A stretch of DNA of 64,000 bases. Source: Glycera tridactyla (lineage: Eukaryota). Below, piece by piece: positions 109-54,229 of this stretch; positions within the stretch are counted from its first letter, which is position 1; the number at the start of each line of letters is the position of its first letter. The notes beneath the pieces are model-generated. The model saw only the letters and a list, made by a program, of their open reading frames with translations. It did no database searches and was not told the origin of the DNA. Made by a program: the position numbers and the translations under genes. The stretch is from NCBI GenBank assembly GCA_965644265.1, contig OZ286459.1, positions 116,312,001 through 116,376,000 of the forward strand. The letters run 5' to 3'.

Positions 109-3100
109 TCAACCGTACTTCCAACAGCACTCACCTGGTTCACCACGATTTCCTGGTGTGCCAGCTGTTCCACTCTCTCCACGGGGTCCTGCAGGTCCAG
201 TCTCACCACGTTCACCACGAGGTCCAGTAGGTCCAGAAGTTCCAGGTGATCCTGATGGTCCGGCTGGTCCAGTTTCACCTCTTTCACCAGGTGATCCAGA
301 GGATCCTTGTTGTCCAGGGTTTCCTGGCTCTCCACGTGGTCCAGATGGTCCAGTTGGCCCTATGGGTCCAATTGGTCCGGCAGGACCAGGCGGACCTGTC
401 AAACCTTGTTCGCCTTGCTCAGCTGCGTTTCCAGGAGGTCCTCTAGGTCCTTGAGGACCTGGCGGACCTGTTGGTCCAGATGGTCCTGGGGGACCAATTT
501 CACCTCTAGATCCATCGGGACCTGATGGTCCCTGCTGACCATTCGATCCTGGGGTGCCAGGGCCTCCACGTTCTCCACGTTCTCCACGTGGACCTGCAGG
601 GCCTGCAGGGCCTGAGGGCCCAGGAGGTCCGGTAGGGCCAGCTGGTCCAGTTTCACCTCTCGAGCCGGGAGTACCAGGGCTTCCAGCTTCTCCTCTTTCG
701 CCAGTAGTTCCTCTAGAGCCTGTGGGTCCAGATGGTCCTGCTTCACCTCGGGGTCCAGATGGACCTCGTGGTCCACTTGGACCAGGAGGTCCTTGCTGCC
801 CAGGTGTGCCAGGGGTTCCTGCTGTTCCTGGTTCTCCGCGTTCACCGGGGGTCCCAGGTGTGCCAGACTCTCCACGTTGTCCAGGTTCTCCTCGCTGGCC
901 AGGACTTCCAGAGGGTCCACTAGGTCCTGATGGTCCACTGGGACCAGCTTCACCTCGTTCTCCAGGTGATCCAGCTGGCCCAGTAGGTCCACTTTCACCT
1001 CGTTCTCCAGATTCTCCACGTTGCCCTGCCGATCCTTGTGGTCCTTGTGGTCCCTGTGGTCCTGCAGGCCCACGGACTCCAATAGGTCCAGCTGGACCAG
1101 GCTGTCCAATGGATCCAGGTGTTCCTGGAGTGCCTGATTCACCACGTTGACCAGGTTCGCCACGCTGCCCAGGTGTTCCACGTTCTCCAGCAGGTCCTGC
1201 TGGTCCGCTGGGTCCTGATGGTCCTGATGGACCTTGCTCTCCACGTTGTCCAGATGTACCTGGTGTTCCAGGAGATCCGGTCTCGCCTCGTGGTCCAGAC
1301 TCACCACGTGGCCCTGATGGACCAGCTGGGCCAGATTCTCCTCTGGGTCCAGCAGGCCCTTGTGGGCCAGCTTCCCCAGGTGATCCTTGAGGTCCCATCT
1401 CACCTCGGGGTCCTGATGGTCCCGCTGGTCCAGCGGGTCCTAAAAATAAAGAATGCATTATGGTTATCAATGGGTGCAATAACTGTTGCAGCGTGAATCT
1501 GAGTCTTGCTCTATTTCTATGATATTTCTTCCCAGTATGTAGTATATAAGACTATCAGCATCATTAGGGATCGGGTAATTTTGTGTGATGATGTAGAATA
1601 TTGGACCAAACTCAGACTTTCTCGTGACAAACCCACTGATATTTCCACCAAGAAGGATATTGTGATCTCAATTATTATTCAGGGTGATATTCCATCACTC
1701 CCACTACTTCGATGACCACATACCTGTTTGTCCTGGTGTTCCTGCTTCACCGCGCTCTCCTGGTGTGCCTTTGTTCCCTGGTTGGCCAGATGGTCCTGCT
1801 GGTCCTGATGGACCAGATGGTCCCGTTGGTCCCATAGGTCCTACTTCGCCACGAGGACCAGATGATCCAGGCGTACCATCAGTGCCAGCTTCGCCACGAG
1901 GTCCAGTAGGTCCCATGGGCCCTGTAGTTCCAGGCGTTCCAGATTCTCCACGTGGTCCAGCAGGTCCAGCAGGTCCTGCTGGTCCTTGTTCACCCCTCTC
2001 GCCTGGAGTTCCAGGTGTACCAGGAGATCCAGCATCACCACGTTCACCTTGTGGTCCTGGTGACCCATTCTCTCCTCGGCTTCCTGTGGGACCTGTTGGT
2101 CCTGAGGGTCCAGACGGTCCAGCCTCGCCACGAGGTCCTGATGGTCCAGCTGGGCCAGGAGGTCCAGATTCACCTCTTTGACCAGGTGTGCCACTGGATC
2201 CTGCTGGTCCTGAAGGTCCACTTTCCCCTCTTGGTCCACTTGGTCCACTAGGTCCGGGTGATCCTGAAATTAAATAAATACACCAAGTAGCAAATCATAG
2301 GAGACTGTAATTTGAAGTGTCCGATCGTGAAGTGGATCTTGAATATGTAAAAGATCAAAATATACAAGACGATGTTGGATGTATGAACATATTTCATGAT
2401 ATATACCTAATTGAGATGATTGTGTGGATAGAATTTATTTGCGGATAGAATCTTGAACCATCCATCAGGTTAACAAAGTTTTGTTAATTTACGACCCTCC
2501 ACATAGGCAGCGAGTATATATAGATGTTTGAATGTGCATCATGGGTTGAAATTAAGGTCCCCAGATAAAATTGCTTGTTTTCACACAGCAGGTTTCGATC
2601 ATATATCTGAAATCTAAAGCTTCTTGTGGATCATCTCACATGAATATAAAGTTCTGACTCTATTTGCTGAAGCACTTCTGGATGAAGTGCAAGTGTTGGT
2701 GGTATTCTTTCTCTCATGGACCAGAGATGCTGAATTACGAGACATTTCATGAAGTTAACAGGTGTGCGGCCATGCCTCAGTATGAATACAAGCGATCATA
2801 TTTATTTGAGTGCACAAATATCGCTCTATTTGCTGGTTTATCACACTCTTATTCAAGTGTACCTACCTGGGTCTCACTTATGTCGACTATTATATATGTT
2901 ATGTGCCCCTACTCAATTTCTTGTGAACATTGTTATTCATACGACTACGTCTTGCACAGCTGGTATTACTCCTAAGTGTACCTATCTGGGTTTCACTTAT
3001 GTCCACTCTTGTCATATGTTGTGACCCGTCAATGTCATGTTCTCATCTCTACCGGACAGCTTGGATAAATATTGTGGAAGCATCTGTTTGCTGCTATATG

Positions 3101-6100
3101 ATGACCACTCGTCAACACACTTTCCAGACTACCATCATTGGCCACTCACGAGATCGACTTCCACATGTTCCTTCACAGCCTCATTACTACATGTGACTTT
3201 GTCGTCAGCTGGCAATTAATCGACTTTAGTCTTTTTTCCACGGTCAATACCAACGTTGACAGCCGCTATATCGGTATACAATAATAACACCCTGACTCTA
3301 GCGCCTAACTAAGGCTTTTCTGCATCTGGACATGTGAAAGTCATGAACAGCAGGTTGGTTTTGGGTGGTCAAACATTCTAGTGTAGGTGAGTCGTTCTGT
3401 GCATATCAGTGTGACATTTTATACTTCTGGTCGGTGTTTGAGGACATAGAAGAATTAAAACCTATTGGGCATAACCCATGAACTGAGATAGACAAGAGAA
3501 TTGCGACATGTGGAATCATGCATGAATGTGGATATGATGTGTCTTGGGGTCAATCAACTCTCATTCTATCATACAGGTTTGAATATGTGGTCGTGTGAAC
3601 GCTATCGGGCGTTGATACTGTGAACAGATGTATATGATATTTGGGTTTGTTTCCTGATTATTGATTCGTAAGTCGCTCATTTTCACCATTTTCTTATACA
3701 CATATGTGAAATACCAGAATTTTGTGTTATCTGCCTAATCGCCCGACCGCGACAGTCGACGCCGTCATGGCCATCGTTATCTCCGCCATTATATCATCTC
3801 CCTCATCGGCGCCATTGACAGCACCACCAACATCACTACAACTACCAAAATGACCGCCAACACCGTCACCACTGCCAAAATTCCCTCCGCCACCGCTACT
3901 GCTGTTGACACCACAAGCACCACCTCTACCCCCACCTCCTCCAATGCCGCAGTCACCGCTGCTACAACCACAACCACAACCACCAACACCGCAACCACCG
4001 CTGCACTCATCCTCACCATGACCTCTGTATCAGAGATACTTGTTAAACAATCTACATATTTGAAGGATAGTCTTTTGGCTATCCATCAGCCTTTCTCTGG
4101 CGTGTGCTGTGTAGATATGAAGCTTTCTCTATTAAGCTGTACCTGGATTTGCGAGCTCTTTTTTTTTTCGTTTGTTGGGCTTTCTTTAATCATTGACATT
4201 AGAGGTGTACACCATACTACACCAATGATATGGTCTAGAGTCCGCTTCTTCAAATCTGCCAATTCCATTTCATAGTAATCCCTAGTGTGCCTTTTCTCCC
4301 CCCCCCCCCCCCCCGTGTCTAAATCAAAACATCGATCAAATTATATTTATCACTCTATGTTTTTTTTTTGTGGAGATTTCTTGTTTCATACTCATTACAC
4401 TGGACTCTCAGTGTCTTGTAGAAATCTCACCTAGTTGGCTCATTTTTTGCCAGCTCTTTAGTGTGTATATATATACTTTTGTGTTCCTATTGTTTCATGT
4501 GTTAGTTCACTGTTTCCTCTGTTAATAGTTTCAGTGCAATCAAATTGTATTGTATTGTATTTGTACCTCCTTGGGGTATGCTTAATGATACCTGCTGACA
4601 GTTATGTATGTTATACCTGATGTATATACCGATAGTTCCAACCAGCTTGAGTACACTATTGAACGCCTGAACAATGAGAGAAAGATGGGCTTTGCTGCAA
4701 TCAATGTTCGTAGTCTGACAAGAAAGCTTGACGAGATTAGGATTCTATTATCACTTAGTAATCTAGAATTTTTAGTCCTCTCTGAAACATTTTTAAACAA
4801 TTCTATAACTGACAATGAGATCGCAATTGAAGGCTACCAATTTTTCAGATCTGATCGATCTGAAGAGTCTGGTAAAAAAGGAGGAGGAGGTCTCTTGATC
4901 TATGCAAATGCCCAACGTGATGTCCAGTCTGTCGATGGTGGCAGTATCTGTACGCCGGATTTAGAATTTCTATGGGTCAAACTTGTCCTCCCATGTACCC
5001 GCCCCACCTTTATCTGTGGCCTCTACAGACCCCCTTCTGGTAATATTAGGCGAGCACTAGACTTGCTACAAACATCAATACAATCAGTCGTTGGAGAGAA
5101 GCGCTCTGATGTTTTAATTCTTGGGGATGTTAATATTAATCTCTTAATTAGAAATGCTGATTGCAGAGTGTACAAATCGTTCGTGTCTAACAACAATCTC
5201 AATTGTCTCATTGACCGCCCAACTCAAGTAACTCCACTAACATCGACTTGTATTGACCATATACTGGTAAATAACCAAAATTAGTATTCCTGCTCTGGTC
5301 TGCATGATCCAGGCATCAGTGATCATGCCCTAATCTTCACTTATCGACAGAGGTCCAAAATTTCTTTCTTCAAGCTTTCGTAGTTTTCGAAATCTGGATA
5401 TTACCGAATTTCAATCGGACATAAGTGGCCTTGAATTTGACGCCTCTGGTCATGCAGACATAGATGAATGTGTTGAAGGTTTTGTGAGTGACCTATGTAG
5501 TATTATGGATAAACATTTGCCAATAATATCCAAACCCCGTCGGATAGAAAATGCAGGCTGGGTAAATAACCATTATATCTCTCTCTTGGATGCTAGGAGC
5601 TATTGGGCAACTAAATACCATCATAGTAAAAACCCTGTCTTTAAATCCAAACGTGATGATTTGATCAAAGAATGTGCTCGCTTGAAACGTCAGCTTAAGA
5701 GAGACTTTATCTTAAATAAAATTAAGTTCGCAGGTGATGATCCTAAAAAGCTCTGGCGTACCATCTGCACGTTTTGGCCAAATTCAAAGTCTAGCTATAA
5801 TTTACCTGTGAACATCGATGGTCATACTAATCAGCAAAATATTGCAGATCATTTAAATGTCCATTTTTCGACCATTGGTGGCAAGTTGGCTGCTGCTTTT
5901 GATAAAAACCCCACTGAAAATATCACGAATACGTTGATATGTCAACCACCAATCTTTGAGTTGAAAGAGGTAACCATAGACACTATTGCTGAGGCGGTCA
6001 AGTTGCTTAGCTCCTCAAATGCTTCAGAGGATGATGGTATCACTAGCAAAATAATCAAACTTGGAGGTGGTGAATTGAACTCGATTGTGCTCGAGATTGT

Positions 6101-9100
6101 AAATTTAAGTATTCGGACTTCACGCTTCCCTGACAGCTGAGAAGTGCTAAAGTGACTGCCCTCCATAAGGGCGGCTCCTCATCGTTATCAACTAATTACC
6201 ATCCAATATCTGTCTTGGCTGCCTTGAGCAAAGTCTTAGAGCGAGTTGTTCATTTTCAGTGCCATGCCTACCTCAGGAAATATAATCTCTTATCGAAGGC
6301 CCAGTCAGGTTTCAGGAAGAGCCACTCTACCACGAGTTGTCTGGTGGATTTTCGCAATACAATCTATGACAATATGGAACAGGGTCTAGCCTGTGGTGTG
6401 GTCTTCCTGGACCTGACTAAGGCCTTCGATACGGTCGATCATGATCTTCTTTTAAACAAATTATTTTACCTTGGTTTCAGGAGATCAGCGGTAAACTGGT
6501 TCCAGTCTTATCTCAGTGACCGTAGCCAATGTACTGCATTGGGAAGGTGACTTCTGGGTTTAGCGAGATCAAATACGGTGTACCTCAGGGGTCCATTCTT
6601 GGACCCCTGCTGTTTGCGCTATCTATTAATGACATGCCTGATGTTGTTACCAATTCCAATATTTATATGTATGCGGACGACACTGCAATTCTTGCCACTG
6701 GAGCCACTGAGGAAGAAATTATTTGTAATCTGCAGCCTGACATCAATGCTCTTGACATATGGTTCACTCGAAATCGACTTACATTTAATCGCTCAAAATC
6801 AAAGTACATGCAATTTGGCACTAGGCAGAAATTGGCGAGCATTACCTCTAATATGAATCATGTGTTGGGATTTGAACGGCTGTCATCATTCAAATATCTT
6901 GGGGTCAAACTTGATTCACAGCTGTCCTTTAGGAACTACATTGATAGCATTGTCAATAAAGTTAAGTCGCGAACTGGTCTCATGTGGCGAATCCGTAGTC
7001 ACATTGACACAAGATTAGCCATCCATTTAGCACAATCATTGATATTACCTCTTTTTGATTATGCAGACATTCTGTTATTGGGCATGTGTGAGCAACTCAA
7101 GAGCAGACTGAAAGTGGCGTACAACAATTGTTTACGTGCTGTCCTCTGTAGGGATGCGCGAACGTCCACCTCAATCCTCTTGGATGAGAGCGGTTTTATT
7201 GATGTGGCTGACCGCAGGGAAATCCATAGCCTTTGCGAACTTTATAAAATCTTAGCCGGAAACTGTTCCGCTCGTCTCTCGGAAGTTGCTGTACAGAAAT
7301 ATCGAATGCTTGTGCCTATGGGTGAAGCCTGTCAGACTAGATCTCGTAGCTGTGAGCTGCTAAAGATTCCTAAGACTAGATTGAAATGTGTTGACGGTAA
7401 TTTTTTTTGTGGTATGTGGTGCTATGTGGAATAGCATACCACAGGATATCCGCATAGCTCCATCGATTGACAGTTTTAAGTCTCAGCTCAAAAAATGGTA
7501 CAGAATCAGGAACGAGATTATCTGATGTCACATTATGTATATGAATGTATCTTTGGTATCTCGTTGTGTTTCTTTTTGTCAAAACCAAGAATGGTACTCA
7601 ATACTTTACATTGCCAGGTGAATGTGTGTTGATTTATTATTTTTCGCCACTTGGCATGCTATTTGGCATTGCCCTGTGTTCCGATCTGATATTATTCGTC
7701 TAATCCTCGCATAATTTTGTCACCGGTTCTCTCCCTGGTCATGTCAATACAGTGACTGTGTGATAAACTCTAATTACTCTTATCGCCACCTGGCACACTA
7801 TTTGGTGATGCCTTGTGTTTTGAGCTTGTCTCTGACAGGTTAGTCATTGCAGGTTATTGTGCTATTCGTTAACTGCTTTGGTATCCTCTTGTGTGTACTA
7901 ATAATGTAAATATTGTACTTGATATATGAATATCCTATCTAATCACATGCTGATCTACCCCCTTGTTTTTTGTCGGTCTACATATCGATAACTCTTGGAC
8001 GCGCAATACCACCCCAAAGTGCGTACTAAATACGCGCTTCTGATGTCATGTTGTCTCGGGTAAACGCCAATCTCTATCTTTACTTCACATCAACTTTGTC
8101 ATGATAATTTTTGTACTCAGCATGTTTCTCAATGATATTTTCTTTTGTCAGCTGTCATGCAATTTCTTTCTGTCAACACGTTTCTTGTATATGTATTCTT
8201 AATGGGAAATATGGTCGTCTGTGGCCACCCATTCTGGAATTCAAATAAAGTTTTTTCAATTCAATTCAATTCAATTCAGAACATATTTCAGGGACTTTCA
8301 GAACCGAGTACAAATTTGGCGAGCTTGATGAATAGAAAAAATTCACTGACCTGGAGATCCTGATTGTCCAGCCTCCCCTCTTGGACCACGCTCTCCTCGT
8401 GGACCTGCTGGGCCTGGGGTTCCACTCGGTCCTGATGGCCCTTGAGGACCTGCCTCTCCTCGTGGACCTGCTGGCCCAGTTTCACCTCGGGGTCCAGAGG
8501 ATCCTGGTGTCCCTGGAGTTCCAGACTCACCAGCCTGACCTGGTTCCCCTCTTGGGCCTTGAGGACCTTGTGATCCCGGTTCACCACGAGGTCCTGGTGA
8601 ACCACTTGGGCCACTTGGACCACTTGGTCCTGGAGGTCCTGATTCTCCTCTTGACCCAGGAGAACCCTGTGGACCAGATTGTCCTAAATCATAAATAAAA
8701 GTAAAAAGAAGTCAGTGATATCTCATCTTTTCCGAATATCTAGTAAATGCTATAAGTGGTGTTGATGGGGAATATTCTGGAAGTCAAGTGATATCAGGGT
8801 TCATCTCACTGAAGAGTTTCAGTGTTTCTGAAGTGCAAGCCACTTAAGTGGTAGCTTGGAAATTGCAGACTTAAATGAAAATCATTTGAGTGTTTTAAGC
8901 ATCCATGTTTACCTCATTTATTTTGAGGATCTAACAAATACACTCACAACATCAACACCCTAGGCTCAGTGTTCAAACTATGGATCAGTACTGATGGGCC
9001 TTGAAATATTGATCCCAGGCTATGGCAGTGATCAGGGATTTCGAGACAAGGTGAGAAAATGTTTTACAGCTTACCTGCACTTCCTGGGGATCCGTCAGTT

Positions 9101-10948
9101 CCTCTCTCACCCTGTGGTCCTTGTGAACCAGGCTCGCCTTGCTCTCCGCGTGGACCAGATGGGCCAGTAGGTCCCGCGGGTCCTGGTGGGCCAGACTCAC
9201 CACGGGAACCTGGTGAACCAGGTGTACCACGATCTCCCCGCTCTCCCTGTGGCCCTGCTGGTCCTGCAGGTCCCACCTCACCACGTGAGCCAGGGGAACC
9301 TTGGGGTCCAGTTGGTCCTGATGGTCCAGCTGGGCCTGCCTCACCCCGTGAGCCTGGCGATCCAGATGATCCGTCTTCACCTCGCGGTCCTGCTGGACCT
9401 TGTGGACCAGTTTCACCACGTGGACCAGATTCTCCTCGTTCTCCAGCGGGACCTTGAGGTCCAGTCTCTCCACGTGGTCCAGCCGGGCCAGTAGGTCCAG
9501 CTTGACCTGCAACAATCATATTATCAGGGATGTTAGCCTGGTACATCATAACCACCACAAACACAATCAAAACTGCTACCCTGACATTGCCCCAACCACA
9601 GCCATAAACAAAGAAACAATGTAACAACACCACTATATAATTGAATGACAAAAAAAGAAATATTACAATTCACAAGTATAGTTGTTCAACTACACACGCA
9701 GCCAAGGCCTCTATCACCACAAGCCCTGCAGCTACTATCACCACCACTATGACCGCCACCACCAATGCTATCTCTGATATTATCATCATCATCACCAATT
9801 TCTTGGAAACAAACAAGAACTATTCACCATCACCACCATCAACATTACGACCACGATCACATTACGATCACCACCATCCTTCTAGCCCTCAGCATTCACC
9901 CTCCCATCAAATCGATTTTTCATTATTCTTTGCTTTTTCCTGAATGATTCACAGCTTTGTGTGAGCTGATTCATACCTGGACTGCCATCACTACCGCGTT
10001 CTCCTTTCTGTCCTGATGGTCCCATTGATCCTGCTGGTCCTGATGGTCCCGATGGTCCTGAGGGTCCAGATGGTCCTGGTGGTCCAGACTCACCACGTTC
10101 TCCTGGTGTTCCAGGCGTACCAGGTGTACCTGAAGGCCCTCGTTCTCCAGGACTACCACGGGGACCTGACGGCCCTTGTGGTCCGGACTCACCACGTGGC
10201 CCAGATGGTCCACTTGGTCCAGATGTTCCTGTTGGTCCAGGTGGGCCAGTCTCTCCTCGAGGACCAGCAGGGCCTTGCGTCCCAGGTGTGCCTATCGGAG
10301 AAACAATCATTTTAGTATAAGATGATAGAAATGTGCAAAAGAAGGAATAGATACTAAGATTTGTTCGATGATCTCTGAGTGGTTGATTATCTGAAATGCC
10401 ACAAAATTTTGGATCAGTTTCAACTGCCTCAGATACATACGAAGAATAGAAAAGAAGCACTCAAGGCAATTCAAGTACTGGAAATAATTCCCAATGTGTA
10501 GTACGAAAATGATAGAGTATTTGATATATCTATACCATAACTACCATGGTAGACCTATCTCCAAATATTTTCATATATGTATATAATATTTCGTGTTTTT
10601 TTTTCTGCACAAATGTGAGCAGGGTACATGTGACGAAGTGGAAAATGGCCCTATCGATTTTTGCTATTGTTGGTATATATACAGCTGATAAACGAAAACT
10701 GTCATAACTGTGACGTAGCAATTAAAGGAGCATTCTGATGTCAGATACATGACCACCGATTGGGACATGGAGCGGCGTAGACGCACGAATTGAAATCATA
10801 TACAATGTCCCCAATGTTGGGAACTTGTCGTACATGAGGAATTATGTTCGCTTCACCGATGGAAGAATTTTGTATTCATATCCACAACAACTTGATGTCC
10901 ATGTGGATATCGTCTCAATCTATTCTCGTGTCAAAAATCTGAGAAAAA

Positions 10949-11015
<67 letters not shown>

Positions 11016-14000
11016 CGTGTGTGCGTGTGTGTGTGTTCGTCGGTGGTCGAAATATGAAGAAAACCNNNNNNNNNNNNNNNNNNNNNNNNNNNNNNNNNNN
11101 NNNNNNNNNNNNNNNNNNNNNNNNNNNNNNNNNNNNNNNNNNNNNNNNNNNNNNNNNNNNNNNNNNNNNNNNNNNNNNNNNNNNNNNNNNNNNNNNNNCC
11201 TGCAGATCCTTGACTTCCTGATTCTCCTCGTGGTCCTCTAGGTCCTTGACTTCCAATCTCGCCCTTTGGCCCAGCTGGTCCTGCTGGTCCCGCTGGCCCT
11301 GGTGACCCAGATTGTCCTGTTGGTCCAGTTGGGCCTTGTGGACCTGGTGGACCACTTTCACCCCGAGCTCCTGGAATATTATCTCCTGGTGTCCCTGGAG
11401 TTCCCGGTTCTCCTCGCTCACCAGGAGGACCTGTTGGTCCAGCTGGTCCACTTGGTCCAGCTGGTCCTATATCACCACGAGGTCCTGCACTTCCAGGTGT
11501 ACCCGGAGTTCCATCCTCTCCACGATCCCCAGGCTGGCCACGTGAACCTGGTGTCCCTGAATTACCAGATGGTCCTGATGGTCCAGTTGGCCCAGGTGGT
11601 CCAATCTCACCCCGTGTCCCAGGACTTCCTGGTGTACCAGCACTGCCATCGGGTCCACGTGGTCCTGCCTCGCCTCGTGGCCCTGTCGGTCCCTGTGGAC
11701 CTGCTTCACCACGTGGTCCCGATGGACCTGCCGGGCCGGATGGGCCTGATGGACCTTGTGGACCCATCTCTCCCCGTTGTCCTGGTGTTCCTGCTGGCCC
11801 TGATGGTCCTAAATAAACAGCATACATTTCCTCGATTAAAACCCTCGTTCCACTTTTGGAAGGTCAGGGACATAATAGCAGTTTTAGTTCAGGGTGCCAC
11901 ATGCAAGAGTCATATCTTGTTTTTTCCATGGAATTGATTCAAATTCGGTTTGCATGTCTTCATACAAAAATGGCAATACATAGATCAATCTCTAATTTCC
12001 AGCAAATGATCTGTGATGATCGGGAGAATCTCTCAAAATGCAAATCCAGCAGGTTCTCTCACTATCTCTTCAATTTCTCAATCACTGTAATTTTTATGTG
12101 GTTTTACAAGTGATTCCTGAAGAACCCCGATTTTTATCGACTGGTAAATGAGACATGAAACAGAGAGATAGTCATCATGCTTTCACTACAAATACCTGCC
12201 ACTTATGTAAACACGGCGGTGGTTTTGACCGGTTGAGAAGTGGAGGTAATCAGAACAAGAAACATACCTATCGGACTTAAACATCATAGACGTTAATCAC
12301 TTTTTGAGATCTCCGCCTGAGGCTGGAGATCTCTATGCTATCACCTCTCTGCTTGACCAGCACACTAACTTCGCTGATTCTGACTCTCGAGGATAATATC
12401 AAACGAATCTTGATCTGAGCTGTGTAAAAGGATCGAATGATCTATCTAACACAATTCTGAGATGATTTATTGATCTGATGAACGACAATTTAGGAAATGT
12501 AGCGATTACGTAATACCAAATTCTCCTAAAACTCGTTTTTGTGGCCGATTACCGAAGCACACAGATATCAGTACACATACTTCTCAGCGCGAACGAGTGC
12601 TTCAGTTTGTGATGGACTGCTGCCCCAGATTCCTGGAGGGGAGGTTGTCATTACCCCCGTCTCTGTCTCTGTCTCTGTCTCTACTCGGATATGTATAGCT
12701 GCGCACAAATAGTGCCTGCGAGGTAGCGTACTAACATAGAGACTAAATAGGTCACTGTGAAACTGGCACGCTCTCGCTCTCTCTCGCTCTCTCTCCCCCA
12801 AACCATCCCTATTTCTCCTGGGGATTTCTAGGTGCACGTGGGCGCTCTTGTTTGTATTATCAGGCAAGGAAGGGGGCAGTCTGGTGTGAATGAATTGCAT
12901 ACCTGCTTGTCCTGGATCTCCACGCTCTCCCTGGCTACCTCCTGGTCCCTGAGGGCCAGCTTCTCCTCGGGGTCCTGACGGTCCTTGTGGACCCGATGGT
13001 CCCTGTGGTCCCTGTGGTCCACTTTCACCGCGCGGGCCTGATGATCCAGGGGTACCTGGAGACCCACTCTCACCACGTTGTCCAGGTTCGCCCCGCTGTC
13101 CAGGGGTGCCTCTCTGTCCTGGTGAACCAGCAGGTCCAGCTGGTCCAGGAGGTCCCGACTGTCCAGCAGGTCCAGATTCACCGATTTCGCCACGAGGTCC
13201 AGGTGATCCTTGCGATCCAGGTGTACCGTCATTACCTCTGGGTCCACTTTCTCCACGAGGTCCCGTAGGTCCTTGTGGACCAGCCTCGCCTCTTGGTCCG
13301 CTAGGTCCAGTTGGTCCACTTGGGCCTACGATTATAGAATACCAGTGATGAGTCAACAGGTGACTATATTATAAATAACATAATATCACCGGCTCAAACC
13401 CAAGTTCACTAACGACCCTATTTTATATCATAAGCTATGTTAACAGTACAAATGGTGATTTGGTTTGGTCTTGCTTGATCGAGGTTTAATGGGAGGGATC
13501 AACCGAGAGGATTATGTATATCATGTGGTCGTGGTCAGTGAAAGCTAGATGTTCTATTACTGCAGGCATCACCCTGACAAACCCTGTACACAAAATGATG
13601 GGGAGCCTGAGAGCCTGTCAAGTGGAAGTAGCTGACAGTTCAGATCAACCTCCACCTATCTAACATGAATTCGGCGATCAGTAGAATGGCATATTTTACT
13701 ATGTACTGGACTATTCATTATCATGGCACAACTTCCCGTACGAATGAAGAAGGTTCTCAGGATCGACAATATTCGAATACGTTCAACCGACAAGATATCA
13801 ATATGAGCGATTCCTATCGGTATAATCTTTGCAGTTACAACTACTTTCAATAGCACTTCAGTGTCTCTTTCAGAAAATTCTTAAACTTTGTGTGAAATCA
13901 ACGAATTCTCAGCGCAGTCAACTAGTTGTCAAAACTACGTGCATTATTCGATTCACCAGCGGGTCTCTCAATCATCTCCCTTTGTGCGATCTCTGTGCCT

Positions 14001-23000: not shown

Positions 23001-24148
23001 AACATAAAATGAAGTTTCTAATACCTTCTGAAATGTACTCCCACATCCAAAATGAGATTTCGATCTTTATATTGAGTGTATAATATCCAGTGTAACTCTG
23101 TTGTCTTGTTTCTTATTCTGTCCTGGGAGAGTCTAGCAGACTGTATTTTCCCATTCAAGTCAAACATGGAACACAGAACCCAATTGCAAACATATGTAGA
23201 TGCACACAATACATTACAGACAAACAGAGAGGATATAGGGATGGAGTATCTTTTACACATATAGGCATTAGAACTAATTCCAATAGAAACTTGGTGTGCT
23301 TTAGTTAGAGTTGAATAAGGGTATAGATGTATAAATCTTCTTGAAGGACACTAGAAATCTCAATCTGTCTTACGATGAGTGGCCATTACAAAATGACATC
23401 CCCCAGGAGTCTAGGCTAAACCCTGAATGGTTGGTAGAGGGCCAGAATACTATCAGGGTATTCCATGCATCAAGGTTAGCTCTACCAGGTACATACCACT
23501 CGTGCTGCATTCATATACATGTTTATTGTATGGTGACCTGAATGCTTTGAATTGTCAATAGACAACTGACCTTGTGATCCAGGTTGTCCAGGTGTTCCAG
23601 GTGTTCCAGACTCTCCTCGCTGACCAGGTTCACCACGTGGTCCAGAAGGCCCTTGACTGCCTGGGGTACCAGATTCGCCTGTCGGTCCCATTGGTCCAGC
23701 TTCGCCCCTTGGGCCAGAGCTTCCTGGTGTTCCAGAGGGTCCAGCCTCTCCACGCTGACCGGGCTCCCCTCGCTGGCCGGAATCACCACGTGGCCCAGGT
23801 GATCCACTTGGTCCTGAAGGCCCAGATGGTCCAGATGGTCCAGGAGGTCCTTGTGGTCCCATTGGTCCAGCCTCACCACGTTGGCCACTTGGTCCTGAAG
23901 GCCCTTGTGGGCCAGTCTCTCCTGAAGAGCCTGGTGTTCCAGGTGTACCAGACTCTCCTCGGGGACCGCTCGGGCCTGCAGGGCCCGATGGTCCCATCGG
24001 GCCAGTTGGTCCTGTTGGTCCTGGTGGCCCTGGAGGCCCTTGTTCACCTTGTTGTGACGGTCCCGGTGGTCCAGTTTCACCTGGAATGTCGGAATAACAT
24101 TGTATTGTGTATGAAAACAATCTCACATATCTGTGTGCAGGTGAGCAT

Positions 24149-24203
<55 letters not shown>

Positions 24204-41700: not shown

Positions 41701-42791
41701 AAATGTCAGCAGTTGGAGTTGGTCGTGCCGATAGATTTACCCACATGGGCGAGATCACTGTGAGAGTGATTTTTCAGCGAGATGGCTGGGTGAATATGCC
41801 TAACATCCAGGGCGTGAAATCAAACATGAGCAGGGCTATGGGGCCCACAATCTCTCGACATAAATCTTTCAATGCGACAAGGTTTGACAACGTTGGCATC
41901 AGTGCCAGGACTGTCACAGACAGTCATCAAAAATGTCAACTTCAAAATGTGATATCTTGGCCATGCTACGGGAAATGTATGTTATTTCAGCTAAGATCTG
42001 GAGTCTTTGATAAGGCCTTCTCATTGATATTTGTAAAGTATTTTCGGGAATGTCTGGCGATCGGTAGGTATACTGCGGTGCTTTCTGTTGCCCTGCCATT
42101 GGCTGCTGACGTCTTTCTCGCGATGAGAAATGGTTATGGGGCCAGGCTTTGTCTGAAGTGAACAGAGGGAAATCATATATCACTTTGAGTAACCTGAAAA
42201 TGTCCATTTTCATAAACTTCACTGTATTCTGTTAGCTATACTGATGTATATTTTGCCAATATACTGAAGCAATTCACAAAGTTGTTCTAGGGGTAGGAAG
42301 GGGGCTCTGTTTCAAAGTAATAATTACTGGGGGTTGTTCAAGCGACCTCACTCCCTTGAATTGAAGATTTACTTAGAGATCATTGCCAAATAATAGTCAC
42401 TGTACCTGTGGGTCCTACTGGTCCAGTCTCTCCCACAGACCCTGCGGGTCCTGCTGGTCCCGAAGGCCCAGCTATTCCACGTGGTCCAGAAGGTCCTGTC
42501 GGACCGAGTGGTCCAGTCTCTCCGGGTTCTCCAGGTGGGCCTGAAGGACCGCTGGGTCCAGAGGGTCCTGGGGGTCCAAGTTGACCTGGAACAAACAGTC
42601 GAAAACATTGAGGAATGAATACATAGATGTTTATAATCGATGAGGTACGGTAATTTTGATTGTCGCTCGCCAAGGCACTGGTCCTAGTTATTTGAGACAT
42701 AACCATCAAGTAAATCTTGGACCAAAGTGATTCAACGATCGATGGATTCTGAGCTACACACACCATACACACACATGTTTAAACACAAACA

Positions 42792-42865
<74 letters not shown>

Positions 42866-45800
42866 GAAGTAACACTCACTTGTTAAGCAGCACAATCTAG
42901 GCAGAAGCCCCCTGCTTTCAGCACTTAATTACAACCATATCTGTGGTAGGCAAGTCATCGACTATGCCGTTTGCATATCCCATGGTCTACGAGATCTCCA
43001 AACTTGACACTGAGAACCCAATATTTGACCAGTCACCCAACTTACCCGGCATCGACGCATAGCAAACTATTAGAAACGACCTTCAGAAACGAATTCAATT
43101 CAAAATCCAATGATCTCACCTGACTCTCCCTTCGCGCCAGTGGATCCAGTGGGTCCTGATGGTCCCCTATTTCCAGTTGGTCCTCTTGGGCCAGTCGGTC
43201 CAGATTCGCCTGCTGGTCCCTGCTCTCCCGTTTCTCCGCGTTGTCCAGTTGGTCCTGACGGTCCAAGTGGTCCTAAAACAAACAGCCAGCGTAGTCATTA
43301 GATTTATACAATATTCATATAAGTGGATTCACCAGGTGGGGTTCCAGAGATCCGGGATGCGAGATCCGAAAAAAAATTGCGAAATGAAGAGTATGGATTT
43401 TGTAATAAGACATATTCGGCTTTGGCAATATCTTCAAATAAAACCACTGTTATGGCCACAAGATTAGAGTTTTCCTGGACAGTGCTGGATATTTTTCATC
43501 TTCAGTTATATGCAATATTTCTGGTATTTTTGTTTTGTGAATATGGTCACCACTAAAACATCAATATGCAACTACTGAGAGGGTCTTTAAAGGGGCAAGT
43601 TTTGACGAGTCAACTATTTTTGGACCCTGATATATTGGTGATGAGATCCCTTATATGATTCCATCTTGCATATCACGCTTAGATTCGTAACAATTGCGAG
43701 ATGATGAATTTGACTATTATATAGGCGGTGATATATCAGGTAAAGGACCTCGTTTTGGTATGTACAGTCGAACCTCCCCTAAAGACCACCTCTCTATAAA
43801 GACCACCTCCCTACAAAGACCGCTTTTTTGCGACCGACGGGTTTTTTATAGGGAGGTTTGACTGTACCTCTTGATGCACATTCATTGTAACACCCCTCCA
43901 CCCACCCTCTCTCTCTCTCTCTACATGTACATGTATGTATATGCTGACCTGCCCTCCTGCTGGTTAATACAGCAAGAATACAGCAAAATTCAAACCGAGT
44001 TTGGTATCGCATTTTTATTTCACGGCCATGCATTCTTGCTTTCATCGCATGGATTAGGAAAGAAATTATCAAAACTAGTTCTCAGCCAGCTTTGAAGTAT
44101 CCCACGCTATATCACATGTGATATTGATTCATATACATGGTGATTGGGCCATTCAGCAAATGCCTGCCATGTGTCTCGTGCTATCATCATTTTGCAGCCC
44201 GTGCCATTAATCATTAACAAATATTTATTCTCCAAACCAATCCAATTCAATCTGACATCAACATGACATTGTTATCGCTACTTAAATAGATAGGTAAGGT
44301 CCTTACCCAGTCCTCCGGTCCCACCGAGAGGTCCAGCTGGTCCACGTGGTCCTGCGGGTCCAGTAGGACCCGGTGGTCCATCTTGTCCAGGTGGTCCAGT
44401 TTCTCCTCTTTCTCCTGGTGGTCCGCTTGATCCTGGGGGCCCTCCAAATCCTGGTACACCTTCATCTCCAGCAGGGCCATCGGGCCCAGCTGGTCCAAGT
44501 GGTCCTGTGGGGCCAGATGGACCAGATTCTCCTTCTGGACCTGGTGGTCCAGTTGGTCCACTTTCACCTCTTGGTCCTGGCGGACCAATTGATCCAGGTG
44601 GGCCTCCGGGTCCAGATTCTCCGGCAGTTCCTTTTGGCCCAGCTGGGCCTCGTGGTCCAAGAGGCCCTCCTGGTCCGAGTGGTCCACTCTCACCTGGAGG
44701 CCCAGTTTCTCCCCGTTGTCCACTTGGTCCTGAAGATCCTGGTGGACCAACCTCACCAGTTGGTCCTGATGGTCCTGATGGTCCAGGAGATCCTGGTGGT
44801 CCTAATGATCCATCCGGTCCAACAGGTCCACCTGGTCCTGCCTCCCCTCTTGGTCCAAGTGGACCAGTAGGGCCTAGCGGACCAATTGGTCCTGGTCCTC
44901 CCGTTGAACCTGTAGCTCCTGTTTCTCCTCGAGGTCCCGATGGCCCGAACGGTCCTAATGGGCCAGCAGGTCCAATAGCCCCAGTTGGTCCTTGTGGGCC
45001 AGTGGGTCCTCTGGGTCCAATTGGACCCAGTGGACCTACGGGTCCTTCGTCTCCTAATGGCCCAGTAGCTCCTGTTGCTCCCCGTGGGCCTATGGGACCT
45101 CGTGGCCCATCTGATCCTGCGGGACCTTCGGGTCCTTGTTCTCCTTCAGGTGCAGCTGGCCCAGTCGGACCAGGGGGCCCCACTGGGCCTGGTGGTCCGG
45201 CAGGTCCTGATTCGCCCCTGTCTCCAGAGATTCCTGAGGGTCCTGAGGGTCCTGCTGGACCAGTCGAACCAACAGAACCAACGGGGCCAGGATTTCCTGG
45301 AGGCCCTCTACTACCGGGTGATCCAAGGGAACCAGGAGATCCTGGGGGGCCCATATTTCCGGGTGGTCCTACAAAAAACACCATATGAGTGAGCGATAGA
45401 TACACAAGAACATACATCAAACATACCGGATGTGCTGGATTTGTTGTGGATGTATCGTAAGCGATTCTCCATACATGTGGTAGCCATCTTGCTTTACCTT
45501 GAGAGTATTTCTTTCATAATATGGCCTTCATGATCTTCATTTACGAAATAATGATGTTGTGCCAATTATAGTCATAGGCGCCAAAAGTGTGTCTTTTCGA
45601 ATCTTTTATCGCCGGAAGGAATGAAGCATTTTGATGACAGGAATCGGTCTGTAGTGTCAGTCTCCGAATATTTCAAAGATTGGCGAACCTTACATTAAAC
45701 GAGGCACCAGCATATAACCATCTACGAATTATCAATACACCTTTCGGATAAAAAGACACAATCCTACCATGTGGGTACCCGAGAAAGAACTTCTCCGTCT

Positions 45801-48800
45801 TTGCAGTATATAAATGTTCGAATAGTAGTTATCTTTGTTTCAGTTTCTCAAAACTAGGAGATTTGTACAAATTGAGATACATATATTGGGGTTATTCTGA
45901 TAGATTTGATGATAAGTGATCAATATGCATCATCGTAAACCAAACATGAGGAAAACTATTTGAACAGCATAAATGGAATGATCTTTTGATATAATCCAAA
46001 AGGCAGAATGTATGATACTAAACGGACTGTGAGTATTAGAACAGGCTGATTTAATATCATCATGAGTACTCGATATGGATGCTTTCAATTATGTTGGTGT
46101 GAGGTAACCATATTCCCTGCTCTTTTCATTCTCATATTCTGGAAGATAACTCCAGTGTGGAGACTGTCATGTTGGTTTCATCTCTGTAAGTTTGGTTCCC
46201 CCCCCCATACATAGGCACGAACTTGTTATTTCTCAATATTGGTGAAAAAAATCGCCAAAAAAACATGTCTCTGAGTTTATCGGACACCAGCATTATGAGA
46301 TAGATCTGTTACCATCATCATTTGGATGTTTATCCAATAGCTGAGGCAATACGGTGTAAATTCAAGGGATTCGTGAAATGGGACAATTCTCGTTCAGCCA
46401 GATCTTGCCACTGGATCACATGATCACAAGATAGAATATCATGCAGTGATACATCGATGTACTTCCATCAAAGTTCGCCCACAAAATTCTAAAAAATTGC
46501 TCTAAACTACCACTTAGCAGCAGAGGTCAGAACTAGCAGTGTGCAAACAATCCCCAAGGTGGCTGCCAGTGTTCGCATGTGTTATGGCGCAGCCCCATGA
46601 GTTATGGTGCTCCTCATGTGCAAGCAATGAACCCTTCATAGCGGGCACACTAATATTGCATCGCCATATATCAAATGGATATCTGTTCTTGTTAAATTTG
46701 AAAGCTGATTCATCCCTGGGAGCCAAAACCAGGGCGGATAGCTTGGGGGGGGGATACATATTCACTACAGAGTAAAAATGCCATCTACCTGGTGGTCCTC
46801 GGTTCCCTTGACTACCTGGCGGTCCACCAGGTCCTGAAGGACCGGTCACACCAGTTGCCCCTGTCGCTCCTACATTTTGTCCTGCAATCCAACATAAAAA
46901 TGAAATGCAGAATTCGAAATGGTCATGTAGATTCTGAATCGGAGCACACTAAAAGTGGCAACATCAATGATAAATATCATGAATATCACGGGAATTATCT
47001 ATAACTATCAGATGAATGGCACAATGTCTTAGCATGTGTGATGCTTGCAGGTAGATCACACAAACTTTGGTAGTGATGCTCCACAGGTAATTCTTGGGAG
47101 AGACGGCTTTCGTGATAGAATGGATACTCACCAGGAAAGTCCATATCGGAGGGCTTTGAAAACGTCCAATGTGTTAGTGATCATTCTGCCTGAGCCAGAT
47201 TTGTTGTTAGGTTCTAATACCAAGCTGCTATACAATACGACACCCTTGAGTGAGTAATGATATCATATAACAAAGGTAAGACCCACATAAACAAGGAAAT
47301 GAGACACATATACACAAATGTTCTCATCAGTACGGAACCCCATATATATATATATATATTCGATTAAATAAATGAATAGATGAATGAAGTCGTTTCACTT
47401 TTCCACGTCCACACACACATACACAAATAAACACACACACAAACACACAAACACACTCACACACACACATTAAAACGAAGTTTTTGGTTTCGAGTAAAAA
47501 AAGATTATGAATGGCAACTAATATAGTGAGAAGAGTGGAAAATAAACAGGTTTTCAGTTGCCAGTAGATCATAAAAGCATAATTACTGAACTGGTAGCCT
47601 GGGAAGAAGTGCAAGAGGTGCAGAGTAGATAATCGCCGAGAAGCACCAGAATGTTCATTAAGGCATGACTGATAACTTATACAGAATAATAACTGATATG
47701 CTAAGAAGAGCCAGTTATCAGCTGGCGATGAAAAATCACCGAAACATAGTAACTTAAGAGTCAGACATCAACCAGTTCTCAGTTGCCCGTGAGAGTTCAT
47801 GAAAGTGAAATAAGTATCTCAAAAAGACGAGCCAAAATGATCAAGAATTCAGTCGCCAGCGAGAGACCATAAGCGCGAACCAACTATCTAAGTATCGGAA
47901 TTGAGCAAGCGTTCAGTCGCCAGCAAACGATCACGCAAGCAAGGGCGAGAGTGTGTGTTGAGGAACACAAGGATGCGTCTTCATGCAGGATGCAGAGAAA
48001 TACCGCAGCTGAGCAGCAGGCAAGGTTGTAGTTGCAGGCTCGATTCATGATTTCACCCCAATCCTTCATCAACGCCCAATCAGATAAGATTCATCTAGTA
48101 GGCAGAGAACAGCGGGCAGATCCTCGGGGATGCCACCATAGAGGACATTGATCCTACAGAAAAGGCGATGAGAGTAATTGCAGTCAAGGTTCTATGAGAG
48201 ATTGGGATAGAATGGCTGACTACTTCACTTCCTTCTTCTGTCACACACATCATGGTTTGTCCTGTAGTCATGTATACTTTGTCTAGACTGTAGGTTTCCA
48301 CTAAGATCCTGAAAATACCTATGTATCGAATGCCGGTGATGTTTTCGAATCATATCTGCCAATCATTTTCCATTGAAATGAGTTTGTGCTGTGGTACAAT
48401 TTCCCAATTGCTCTGTTATGAATGGGAAGTGCCTGAATAGAACAGGTATACTTCTAAAGCAGCCAATTGGTGCTTTGATCCCATTTACCTGAGGCAGATA
48501 GACCAGCTAGTTTNNNNNNNNNNNNNNNNNNNNNNNNNNNNNNNNNNNNNNNNNNNNNNNNNNNNNNNNNNNNNNNNNNNNNNNNNNNNNNNNNNNNNNN
48601 NNNNNNNNNNNNNNNNNNNNNNNNNNNNNNNNNNNNNNNNNNNNNNNNNNNNNNNNNNNNNNNNNNNNNNNNNNNNNNNNNNNNNNNNNNNNNNNNNNNN
48701 NNNNNNNNNNNNNNNNNNNNNNNNNNNNNNNNNNNNNNNNNNNNNNNNNNNNNNNNNNNNNNNNNNNNNNNNNNNNNNNNNNNNNNNNNNNNNNNNNNNN

Positions 48801-51800
48801 NNNNNNNNNNNNNNNNNNNNNNNNNNNNNNNNNNNNNNNNNNNNNNNNNNNNNNNNNNNNNNNNNNNNNNNNTGTGTGACAGAAAAGGATCGTGGTCGAG
48901 AGAAGAATACTGGCGGTCCGGGTTCCTACCAGGGCCAGGGCCAGGACCTGTCGTCGTGCCACATGCAGAGTCAATCAGACGCTCCACTTCCCTGTGCAGG
49001 TCTTCGAAATCCTGCGCTTGGATCACCAATGATGGATCACTGGCAATAGACAGCAGCTCGGAACGGTCAACATTTGACGTCACGCCAACAGCGAGAACGG
49101 TGGCTTCCTGTTGAAGAAGGGCCGCCTCGTCACCCGTGCGGTGTCTATCGATGTTGGAGTTTCCGTCAGTGATGACGATGGCCAGATTGAAGACGTTCGG
49201 ACGGTCGCCATTGTAGTAGTTGAAGATGGTTTCACGTAACTCACGTAAGCCGTCAGCTGTGTTCGTCATCCCGCCAGTTAATGTCATATCGGAGATGGCC
49301 TGTAGCAGATCGTATTCATCAAAGTAGCGGTCCAAGTCCCACTGCCATTCGGCATAGTTGGCAAATTTCACCATGCCAACACGGACACGGGTCCGGCCAA
49401 TCGGCAGGTATTTAACAATCTCCATGATGAAATCCAAGACAAGTGCCCAGTTCTCGTTACCCTGTTCCCTGATGCTACTTGAGTCATCCACCAGGAATCC
49501 CAGGTCCAATACATCCCAGCAATCTGTAAGAGGAGAACACTGTGAATTTGTGAAAAATAGCATACCAATGCCGAATTGGGTGAAATTAGGCAACTGCATG
49601 CAATATGATGCCTGATATTCCTTGGCTGAAAGTGCAAATGATTGAAATTGTGGGACAAAAGACCCAAGATAATATGCACAAGGTGTGAGTGATGGTTGAT
49701 GTTTCTGCAACCCAAGTAGGCTTATTTGTGACAAAAGGAATTTTGAAACATTGACTAGATGAAAAGTATTGTCTACAGTGGTGAGCAAGGCTCCCTGCTC
49801 GGATGGGTGACTGATATGGACAAGTTTCCCGACCAAATACCAGATCTTCACCATTACACAGATCTGTGTTGAGGTAAGGCAGGACTCCTATACTCTACAA
49901 CTTCACATCTCCCATTTGTGAATTGGTACTTGAATAGAAGCTGGGATGGCAATGTAGAGTTCTCATTCCATGCAATTACATCTGAATAGGTCTGCTGACG
50001 ACGGATGCAAATACGTCGAATGTGACGAAGCATGATATTGCTGTATTGCATGACTACGATTCTTTTCATGAGAGGCTGGGATACCATAGGCTCGAGAATA
50101 GAGCACTGATATGACAGAAATTAGGTGAGCACAGATGGAGCAACAATTTGCGCTGGGGGTCGTGATAAAGAATAGGCATCAAATTGGGATAGCACCCGAG
50201 GGTATCTACAATAATTCTGTCGATATTTGCAACTTATATCTAAATTCTTGTAGCATGTTGAGTATAACAAGAAAACAACAAGATCATGGTTTGAAAATAA
50301 CAAGATCATGTCATCCCATATAGTAGTGTTGTCTGAGGCTATTTCAAGGATAGCTCTGCAATCCAAAATTTGGTGATTTCATCTGATATACACGGACACA
50401 AACAACTCACCTGTCTTATGCACAGGACAAATGCCATCTAGTGCCAAGTCGATGAAACTGGGATTTCGGTCAAGGTCACTCCATTGTCCGACGATGATTG
50501 GCGGAGGCGTCGAACCATCAACATTGGGCAAAATTTGCGTATTAGCGCCATTAACGGCGACGTTAATGTACCAATCGACGACGTCATCACGTAACAACTG
50601 TGTGGCTTTATTAGCGATGGTCTGTGTCGGGTATTGTGAGTACGTAGTGTCGGTAATCATGACGACGACCTTCCGAGCATACGGTCGGTAGGCAATGTTG
50701 GTGGTAAAGGCGGTCTCGAGACTATCGAGGCATTTCATCGGATCGCCATCTCCCGGCGTGATCCTCAACTGCAGAGCCGCTTGCACCGCCGCCTCGCGGT
50801 CATTCGGGTAATCATCAAAATACCAGCGGACCGTCTCGGAGTTGTAGTCGATGGCGGAGGTCCAGATGAAATTCTCCGTCGGGTGGATGTTCAACCTGTC
50901 TATAACGGCTGCCAGATAACCCTGGGCGTAGGGTATATAATAGGAATACTGGGCCGATACACAGAAGGCAACGTCGATAATCTCGTAGCACCCATCTTCC
51001 ACGTCAGCTCCTAGTTTAATTCACAGATCAATGTGGCATCAAGCAATTCATCATTTTCATTGAAGAGAAGTGAGAAATTGTATGGGGAGTTCCGGTATCT
51101 GTATTGGATTGATGTCGCAAAATACCCTTGTTATATCATAGAAATCGACACACCGGAGATTGATGACTGAATTTCTAATGCAATACATGTATTGAGGCAA
51201 ATGGCGTCCAGAAAATGTCGACGCTGAAACCTCCTGAGACATTCAAGGTAGAATTAGTGTTTGTCTTTGTTGTTGCTGAAATCGTCAACGTCGTCTTTTT
51301 TGTAGTTGTTGTGATTCTGTTTTTGTGGTGATTGTGGTTTTGTGGTGGTTGTCGTCATCATTGTTGTTGAGTGGTCACTGTGGTTGTTTTATTTTTTATG
51401 GTTGTCGTTGTTGTTGTTGGTGTTGTTGTTGTTGTTGTCATTGTTGTAGTGGTGGTGGTATTGGTGGTGGTGCCGGNNNNNNNNNNNNNNNNNNNNNNNN
51501 NNNNNNNNNNNNNNNNNNNNNNNNNNNNNNNNNNNNNNNNNNNNNNNNNNNNNNNNNNNNNNNNNNNNNNNNNNNNNNNNNNNNNNNNNNNNNNNNNNNN
51601 NNNNNNNNNNNNNNNNNNNNNNNNNNNNNNNNNNNNNNNNNNNNNNNNNNNNNNNNNGATCACTATTGTCGTTGTCGTCATTGCCATTCCCAGAATTGAA
51701 AAATCGGTTCTGGATTCTCGCCCTGATCCTCCAAGAAATCACGTTTTCAAATGCATGGGAGCGCATGAGGGATACGCGAGTGAGGAACAACAGAAAGACA

Positions 51801-54229: not shown

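Follow-up and report, generated by a model that had tools for sequence, protein, structure and literature searches.

A giant collagen gene of Glycera tridactyla with a vWA head, a candidate annelid cuticle collagen

The stretch analysed here, called the window throughout, comprises 64,000 nucleotides from Glycera tridactyla (contig OZ286459.1 of assembly GCA_965644265.1, positions 116,312,001 to 116,376,000). Its minus strand carries a giant collagen gene in which an exon resembling a signal peptide is followed by two exons for vWA domains and by 42 exons that splice to a Gly-X-Y helix of 5,285 residues. We interpret the locus, with a probability of about 0.6, as the 5′ part of a gene that encodes a giant secreted collagen of the type found in annelid cuticles, an assignment that draws on length, composition and analogy. 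The gene had been pointed out in an earlier note made from the sequence, and we examine here its exon structure, its N-terminal head, its 3′ limit in the window and its kinship with other collagens. Coordinates of all features are collected in Table 1.

Collagen exons and the triple helix

Counted over runs of at least five, the minus frames together hold 1,787 Gly-X-Y triplets and the plus frames 344, which places the gene on the minus strand. The collagen exons extend from 46881 down to 135. Each is preceded by AG and followed by GT, the G of the acceptor AG being the first base of a GGN codon in every block, and the donors share the consensus (C or A)CAG/GT(A or G)AGT, where the slash marks the splice point. 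All 41 introns are in phase 1 and split a Gly codon after its first G. Exon lengths span 93 to 1,305 nt and are multiples of 9 nt throughout, except for exons 1 (93 nt) and 24 (510 nt), which carry interruptions of one or two residues, and for exon 37, which runs into an assembly gap. As Gly-X-Y coding continues right up to that gap, the 3′ end of exon 37 is lost and some triplets are absent from the model. A scan of the introns for small phase-1 exons revealed no missed mini-exons, and the Pfam Collagen profile matches the two largest exons at E values of 3.7e-73 and 4.5e-49.

When spliced, the 42 exons give 5,285 residues without a stop, made of 1,755 canonical triplets, five Gly-less triplets and five extra residues (V, QQ and IP); with the N-terminal exons the visible product reaches about 5,740 aa. 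The splicing of 42 exons into one giant helix, as claimed in the earlier note, is thus borne out. Its figure of 1,759 triplets plus four residues (5,281 in all) describes the same model and differs from ours in letting the first collagen exon begin at another possible acceptor, 46870. The helix is interrupted at eight small sites, or about once per 660 residues: the five Gly-less triplets (APE, AET, SQR, APR and AEQ), the two 2-residue insertions (QQ and IP) and the single V. The Gly-less triplets lie at 45153-45145, 36868-36860, 27954-27946, 21050-21042 and 423-415 on the minus strand and all begin with Ala or Ser. Each of them is followed immediately by a Gly-Glu triplet, as is the QQ insertion. 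An Ala- or Ser-first triplet followed by Gly-Glu is a recurrent, stereotyped type of interruption in this helix.

The composition is uniform from the first collagen exon to the last. Per 1000 residues the helix contains 338 Gly, 238 Pro, 113 Ser, 63 Thr, 62 Glu, 55 Arg, 47 Ala, 35 Gln and 4 Lys, with no Cys, Trp, Tyr or His anywhere along it. Pro (53 %) and Glu (18 %) are prominent in the X position, while Y is shared among Ser (24 %), Pro (19 %), Arg (16 %), Ala (12 %) and Thr (12 %), so that Ser, Thr and Ala together occupy 48 % of Y positions and Ser or Thr stands in Y in 36 % of triplets. A pattern count over 1,730 flanked triplets gives 0.531 for G-P-Y and 0.185 for G-X-P. Only 6.7 % of triplets are Gly-Pro-Pro (GPP), and GPS, GPR, GPT and GPA are each commoner than GPP. 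Arg-Gly-Glu is strongly over-represented, accounting for 197 of the 292 Arg residues when about 52 would be expected from the X and Y frequencies. Unmodified, the helix region has a mass of 469 kDa and a calculated pI (isoelectric point) of 4.96. Autocorrelation and Fourier analysis of charge and hydrophobicity found no long-range periodicity beyond period 3 and no signal resembling a D-period. The helix also contains 26 RGD motifs, and KGE and KGD pairs are almost absent (15).

One further regularity concerns the exon lengths. Seven exons in a row (28911-34942, minus strand) alternate as 225, 351, 225, 351, 225, 351 and 225 nt, a pattern that points to an ancient duplication of two neighbouring exons, 576 nt together. 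A recent tandem duplication of these exons is unsupported, since equal-length exons are 0.51-0.63 identical and random in-register segments are 0.51 ± 0.07 identical.

Table 1. Positions of the exons, domains, gaps and other features of the window, from the 5′ end of the gene onwards
Feature	Position	Strand	Remarks
Exon 1 (N-terminal)	54085..54229	-	ATG, 48 codons plus 1 base; signal-peptide-like; phase-1 donor G/GTAAGG
Gap	51477-51657		intronic; non-coding flanks
vWA-like domain 1	50411..51010	-	single phase 1-1 exon, 200 aa; Cys near both ends
vWA domain 2	48930..49523	-	single exon, 198 aa, canonical; phase-1 donor, alternative donor 18 nt upstream
Gap (359 N)	48514-48872		between vWA domain 2 and first collagen exon; vWA domain 2 frame open into gap
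Possible exon tail	48513-48489	-	ends in KLAGLSAS; phase-1 donor TCAG/GTAAAT; directly past the 359-N gap
Collagen exons 1-7	46881-46789, 45368-44307, 43272-43120, 42585-42406, 41473-41186, 41070-40630, 40267-39548	-	
Collagen exons 8-14	39221-38997, 38457-38143, 37110-36742, 36107-35739, 34942-34718, 34195-33845, 33315-33091	-	
Collagen exons 15-21	32382-32032, 31594-31370, 29808-29458, 29135-28911, 28052-27693, 27166-26672, 25923-25663	-	
Gap	30658-30818		intronic; non-coding flanks
Gap	28689-28817		intronic; non-coding flanks
Collagen exons 22-28	25518-25231, 24906-24466, 24080-23571, 22993-22553, 22325-21813, 21166-20960, 20465-20277	-	
Collagen exons 29-35	19402-19187, 18754-18458, 18100-17921, 16960-16700, 16414-16064, 15522-15262, 14749-14291	-	
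Collagen exons 36-42	13325-12903, 11808-gap, 10291-9977, 9506-9075, 8683-8351, 2263-1724, 1439-135	-	
Gap	11066-11198		takes 3′ end and donor of collagen exon 37 (start 11808); CA microsatellite on far side
Degraded non-LTR (LINE) retrotransposon	4604..7434	+	in intron 40, opposite strand to the gene
Consensus donor CAG/GTGAGT	109..134	-	after last visible exon; 134 bases from window edge

The N-terminal head

Exon 1 opens with an ATG at 54229 that has an in-frame stop upstream of it. The encoded peptide has a basic n-region, a 10-residue hydrophobic core (Kyte-Doolittle mean over 11 residues up to 2.87) and an end of the form PLAA/G, and has no Pfam match. The exon of the first vWA-like domain lacks an ATG of its own and can be entered only through a phase-1 acceptor, which matches the donor of exon 1. 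Among open reading frames (ORFs) of at least 45 aa between exon 1 and the helix, the two vWA exons are the only ones recognisable as domains, and these were the ones scanned against Pfam.

The two domains differ greatly in preservation. The first has lost the DxSxS MIDAS motif and scores 22.3 bits (E 1.7e-4) against Pfam VWA, where the gathering score is 23.8. Its best ten named Atlas feature matches are all VWA, at a score of 0.94, and it aligns by BLASTP to the second domain over its full length with 22 % identity (E 0.006), both domains having a Cys near each end. A low-confidence single-sequence structure model (pLDDT 54) finds its best TM-scores, 0.46-0.47, with the vWA domains of MIC2 and vWF A3; no sequence match was found in PDB. 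On the strength of the Pfam score, the Atlas neighbours, the alignment and the structure-model matches, the first domain is a degenerate vWA without MIDAS.

The second domain matches Pfam VWA with 112 bits (E 4e-32). Its AlphaFold model (pLDDT 92.5, pTM 0.90) superimposes with TM-scores of 0.83-0.91 on the vWA domains of matrilin and of collagens VI, XII, XIV, XX and XXII, at 23-34 % identity, and the PDB sequence matches are headed by collagen VI alpha3, followed by mussel PTMP1 (E 8.8e-42). In a 40-sequence alignment its D, S, S, T and D fall in the conserved metal-site columns. The predicted fold of the second domain is thus a confident, canonical vWA. The architecture proposed in the earlier note, a signal peptide and two vWA domains before a nearly unbroken helix, is supported, with the amendment that the first vWA is a degenerate one, below the Pfam threshold and devoid of MIDAS.

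Searches for relatives gave little. A HMMER search for orthologues with the second domain among 1.84 billion representatives yielded none, the ranking being dominated by multi-vWA proteins; none of the best 150 relatives has a long helix, the maximum being about 110 triplets. Word-indexed searches returned no match for the first domain, and for a collagen exon of 435 aa nothing beyond generic collagen repeats of bacteria, phages and animals. With the second domain they returned one match, the metagenomic ORF L001:213-899 (protein P0151, on an ENA contig of 1.2 kb), at 41 % identity. P0151 ends in SSACG-AVGP straight after its vWA domain, resembling the end of the second vWA exon here, and could be part of a related vWA-collagen whose animal source has yet to be sampled.

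Between the second vWA exon and the first collagen exon lies the 359-N gap, one of nine N gaps in the window. It may conceal all or part of an exon, at most a small one, and a possible exon tail with a phase-1 donor lies directly past it. Upstream of the gene, the interval 54300-64000 shows no convincing coding on either strand and includes four of the N gaps as well as TG/CA microsatellites (e.g. 63300-63450).

The 3′ end of the gene

The last visible exon ends at 135 with CCAG/GTGAGT, and reading through this donor gives GECCWKYG and then a stop at 111-109. The gene may either leave the window through this splice site or end within it. In the latter case the donor at 135 would be unused, the chain would lack a C-terminal globule, and the molecule would be a rod of 1.51 µm, its three chains held together by a Cys-Cys knot as in collagen III. 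The two adjacent Cys that directly follow the last triplet, and the stop after eight codons, would suit such an end. However, read-through of the 41 donors, the last one included, meets a stop after a median of eight codons, and several of the resulting peptides contain Cys, so that the GECCWKYG tail is unremarkable. The donor-like sequence by itself is not decisive either, because GGTGAGT occurs eight times inside exons, where it is plain coding for Gly-Glu-Ser; yet CAG/GTGAGT is the best possible donor and sits at the same phase-1 position in a Gly codon as the 40 other donors.

Further evidence comes from the chain itself. Its last 60 residues carry no stabilising GPP cluster. A calculated length of 1.51 µm (5,285 residues at 0.286 nm each) equals the length quoted for Riftia in the earlier note and would favour a complete gene, whereas the Thr content here, 6 %, is well below that of Riftia cuticle collagen. 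Other giant collagens of annelids have 7,700-8,900 aa (collagen passage of PMC12403961). On balance a gene that ends in the window is an unlikely alternative, though the best of those considered, and the gene probably continues past the window start. Because it probably leaves the window, and because part of exon 37 is lost in a gap, 1.5 µm must be taken as a minimum for the helix. The match to the Riftia length is probably a coincidence of the window edge, and the figure of about 1.5 µm in the earlier note, which is set by that edge, does not hold as it was given there. Its observation that no C-propeptide appears in the window is confirmed: neither a C-propeptide or COLFI domain nor, downstream of the helix, a vWA domain is found within it.

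Relation to annelid cuticle collagens

No triple helices have matched those of annelid cuticle collagens in length since the 1960s-90s. These collagens have been studied as proteins in Lumbricus, Nereis, Riftia, Alvinella and Arenicola (by Gaill, Mann, Timpl, Kimura and Tanzer). They contain much Ser and Thr, little Lys and few aromatic residues, they carry Ser/Thr-linked sugars, and the chains of Nereis have a mass of about 470 kDa. Gaill and colleagues reportedly measured helices of about 1.5 µm in Riftia and 2.4 µm in Alvinella with one terminal globule, and 2.4-2.5 µm applies to most species. No other animal collagens are known to have helices of such length, and of the cuticle collagens only peptide fragments are known to have been sequenced. 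A review describes a very long helix with globular domains and a high mass, and glycosylated Thr in Riftia (PMC11766948); earthworm cuticle collagen is unusually rich in 4-hydroxyproline (4-Hyp) in the X position (PMC8233474).

The collagen of the window resembles them in several respects. With at least 5,285 residues and 1.51 µm its helix lies within the range of annelid cuticle collagens (1.5-2.5 µm; 5,000-8,700 residues). Its very long helix recalls annelid cuticle collagens (PMC11766948), and its concentration of Pro in X recalls the earthworm protein, in which Pro and Hyp are concentrated in X (PMC8233474). The excess of Pro in X, the small hydroxylated residues and Ala in Y, and the low content of Lys and aromatics are as in cuticle collagen of the earthworm type, and the pattern as a whole fits it (PMC8233474). 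It agrees, too, with the Ser/Thr-linked sugars of annelid cuticle collagens. As for globules, the N-terminal vWA pair is seen, and the other end is outside the window or ambiguous. The likeness has its limits in that the protein is here a gene model and that its visible helix measures 1.5 µm, compared with the 2.4-2.5 µm of most species.

Giant annelid collagens have recently been noticed in genomes. The Alvinella pompejana genome paper of 2025 mentions, under cuticle composition, a collagen of 8,859 aa, and three Paralvinella transcriptomes encode collagens of 8,689, 8,413 and 7,719 aa (PMC12403961). The transcriptome lengths show that such chains are made from single mRNAs. The same passage lists a similar giant collagen of Eisenia andrei (GWHPACBE014886) and notes that siboglinid gene predictions fall short of the giant length; the giant collagens of the paper include APscaff0012.353.p1 of Alvinella. 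All are several times longer than any vertebrate collagen, as is the chain here, and differ from it in having 7,719-8,859 aa compared with about 5,740 aa visible in the window. Eisenia shares with Glycera the excess of X-Pro over Y-Pro, at 0.403 and 0.215 there and 0.531 and 0.185 here, where it is more marked (PMC12403961). The giant class was thus already noted at gene level in 2025, which answers the question, left open in the earlier note, whether such a gene model had been described; the link to cuticle collagen made in that note is plausible and gains support from these giant collagens and from the X-Pro excess (PMC12403961). In its passage on collagens the paper describes neither domains nor exons nor how the helix is interrupted, and it mentions there no N-terminal vWA pair, no uniform phase-1 exons and no Arg-Gly-Glu pairing. 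Our literature search found no other gene-level description.

The chain might instead be a giant matrix collagen, interstitial or anchoring, or a non-annelid one, whose likeness to cuticle collagens is only compositional. The second vWA domain is compatible with this, since the vWA domains of collagen VI, FACIT collagens, matrilins and others all lie at the same distance from it (23-34 % identity). Against it stand the length of the helix, which in animals is known only from annelid cuticle collagens, and the combination of X-Pro, Y-Ser/Thr/Ala and near-absent Lys, which fits the annelid cuticle type. We consider an unrelated matrix collagen rather improbable, somewhat more so than a gene that ends in the window.

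Other collagens and vWA proteins offer partial parallels. Collagen VI (and XXVIII) likewise joins vWA domains to a collagen helix; collagen VI alpha3 is the best PDB match of the second vWA domain, and the roughly 110 triplets of the collagen-bearing proteins among its best 150 relatives are the length of the collagen VI helix. Collagen VI has vWA domains on both the N- and the C-terminal side of a short helix (about 335 residues); the helix here is some 15 times longer (at least 5,285 residues), and it is accompanied by two N-terminal vWA domains only, one of them degenerate, with neither a C-terminal vWA nor a Kunitz domain seen. Mussel PTMP1, the second-best PDB match, is a secreted vWA pair that binds collagen but has no collagen domain of its own. 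The fibrillar collagens (I, II, III, V and XI) share a long helix with hardly any interruptions, but it measures about 1,014 residues, and their exons, of 54 bp and related sizes, start on an intact Gly codon, whereas the introns here are in phase 1 and split Gly codons; no COLFI domain and no charge periodicity like a D-period were found in the window. Collagen VII, with 1,380 residues the longest vertebrate helix (PMC11923368), also has a vWA-containing head before the helix. The helix here is almost four times longer and far less interrupted, and the nine FN3 repeats of collagen VII are not recognisable among the ORFs of at least 45 aa between exon 1 and the helix, nor is its C-terminal Kunitz-like domain seen in the window.

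Whether the exons make one chain can be judged from the array itself. The introns measure 115-1,561 nt, apart from intron 40 (6,087 nt), whose length is explained by the insertion of the LINE. The reverse-transcriptase ORF of this element matches RVT_1 clusters at 0.97, its reverse-transcriptase ORFs being broken by frame shifts, and its first ORF is endonuclease-like by eye only. A Rfam scan gave no matches. The introns bear no similarity to one another and equal-length exons are at background identity, so that the array is neither a collapsed or expanded repeat nor a recent duplication. No second start exon, signal, vWA block or terminal exon was found between the collagen exons.

With all introns in phase 1, and with the fully read exons keeping the frame and mostly also the triplet register, any subset of exons would splice in frame. 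The exons could then be interchangeable cassettes, skipped to yield a family of shorter rods in place of a single chain of 5,285 residues. However, constitutively spliced collagen genes have the same design, the splice sites are uniformly strong, and in Paralvinella undivided transcriptome contigs code for chains of 7,719-8,689 aa (PMC12403961), so we regard such a family of rods as very improbable. Several tandem genes, a pseudogene or an assembly-expanded repeat might be suspected because collagen repeats misassemble easily, a caution voiced also in the collagen passage of PMC12403961, and because the window has nine N gaps, but this is practically dismissed by 5,285 codons without a stop, by introns and exons that are all distinct, by the lack of any internal start, signal or terminal exon, and by introns too short to be intergenic regions.

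Several observations weigh against a secreted, vWA-headed collagen of the cuticle type. The n-region of the signal peptide is unusually long (about 30 residues), and the signal was assigned by eye and hydrophobicity only. The first vWA domain does not reach the Pfam gathering score. The junction of the second vWA domain with the helix passes through the 359-N gap, and its continuity rests on strand, order and matching phase and not on read sequence. The C-terminus is not in the window, which leaves a single terminal globule unproven. Finally, no orthologue was retrieved by searches with the vWA exons and the 435-aa collagen exon.

If the locus nevertheless encodes a giant cuticle-type collagen, three chains would assemble into a rod, 1.5 µm long or more, whose single globule would consist of the vWA pairs. 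Such a helix would not rely on Gly-Pro-Hyp and could draw its stability from hydroxylated Pro in X, to which O-glycosylated Ser and Thr in Y and the many Arg(Y)-Gly-Glu(X) pairs would add. Lysine-derived cross-links are not expected, as there is almost no Lys. In a collagenous cuticle the rods would be packed as crossed fibres without striation, where the vWA head, with its intact metal site, might serve attachment or end-on assembly. A bolder proposal, which we hold to be doubtful, is that the locus is the first to show in detail, at the level of the gene, how a micrometre-long cuticle collagen is built, with a head of one dead and one live vWA and no C-propeptide, with an end in a Cys-Cys knot or a length of about 8,500 residues, with X-Hyp, glycosylated Ser/Thr and about 200 Arg-Gly-Glu pairs for stability, and with folding that starts from the N-terminal vWA head, opposite to classical collagens.

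The value of the gene is tempered by the giant annelid collagen models already reported in 2025 (collagen passage of PMC12403961). With a verified gene model, peptides of the cuticle could be placed on the sequence, and so could sites of glycosylation and of hydroxylation in X. Such a model would also open the question of how a helix that exceeds the one of collagen I five to eight times in length registers and folds, and its uniform phase-1, register-neutral exons would show how such a gene can grow.

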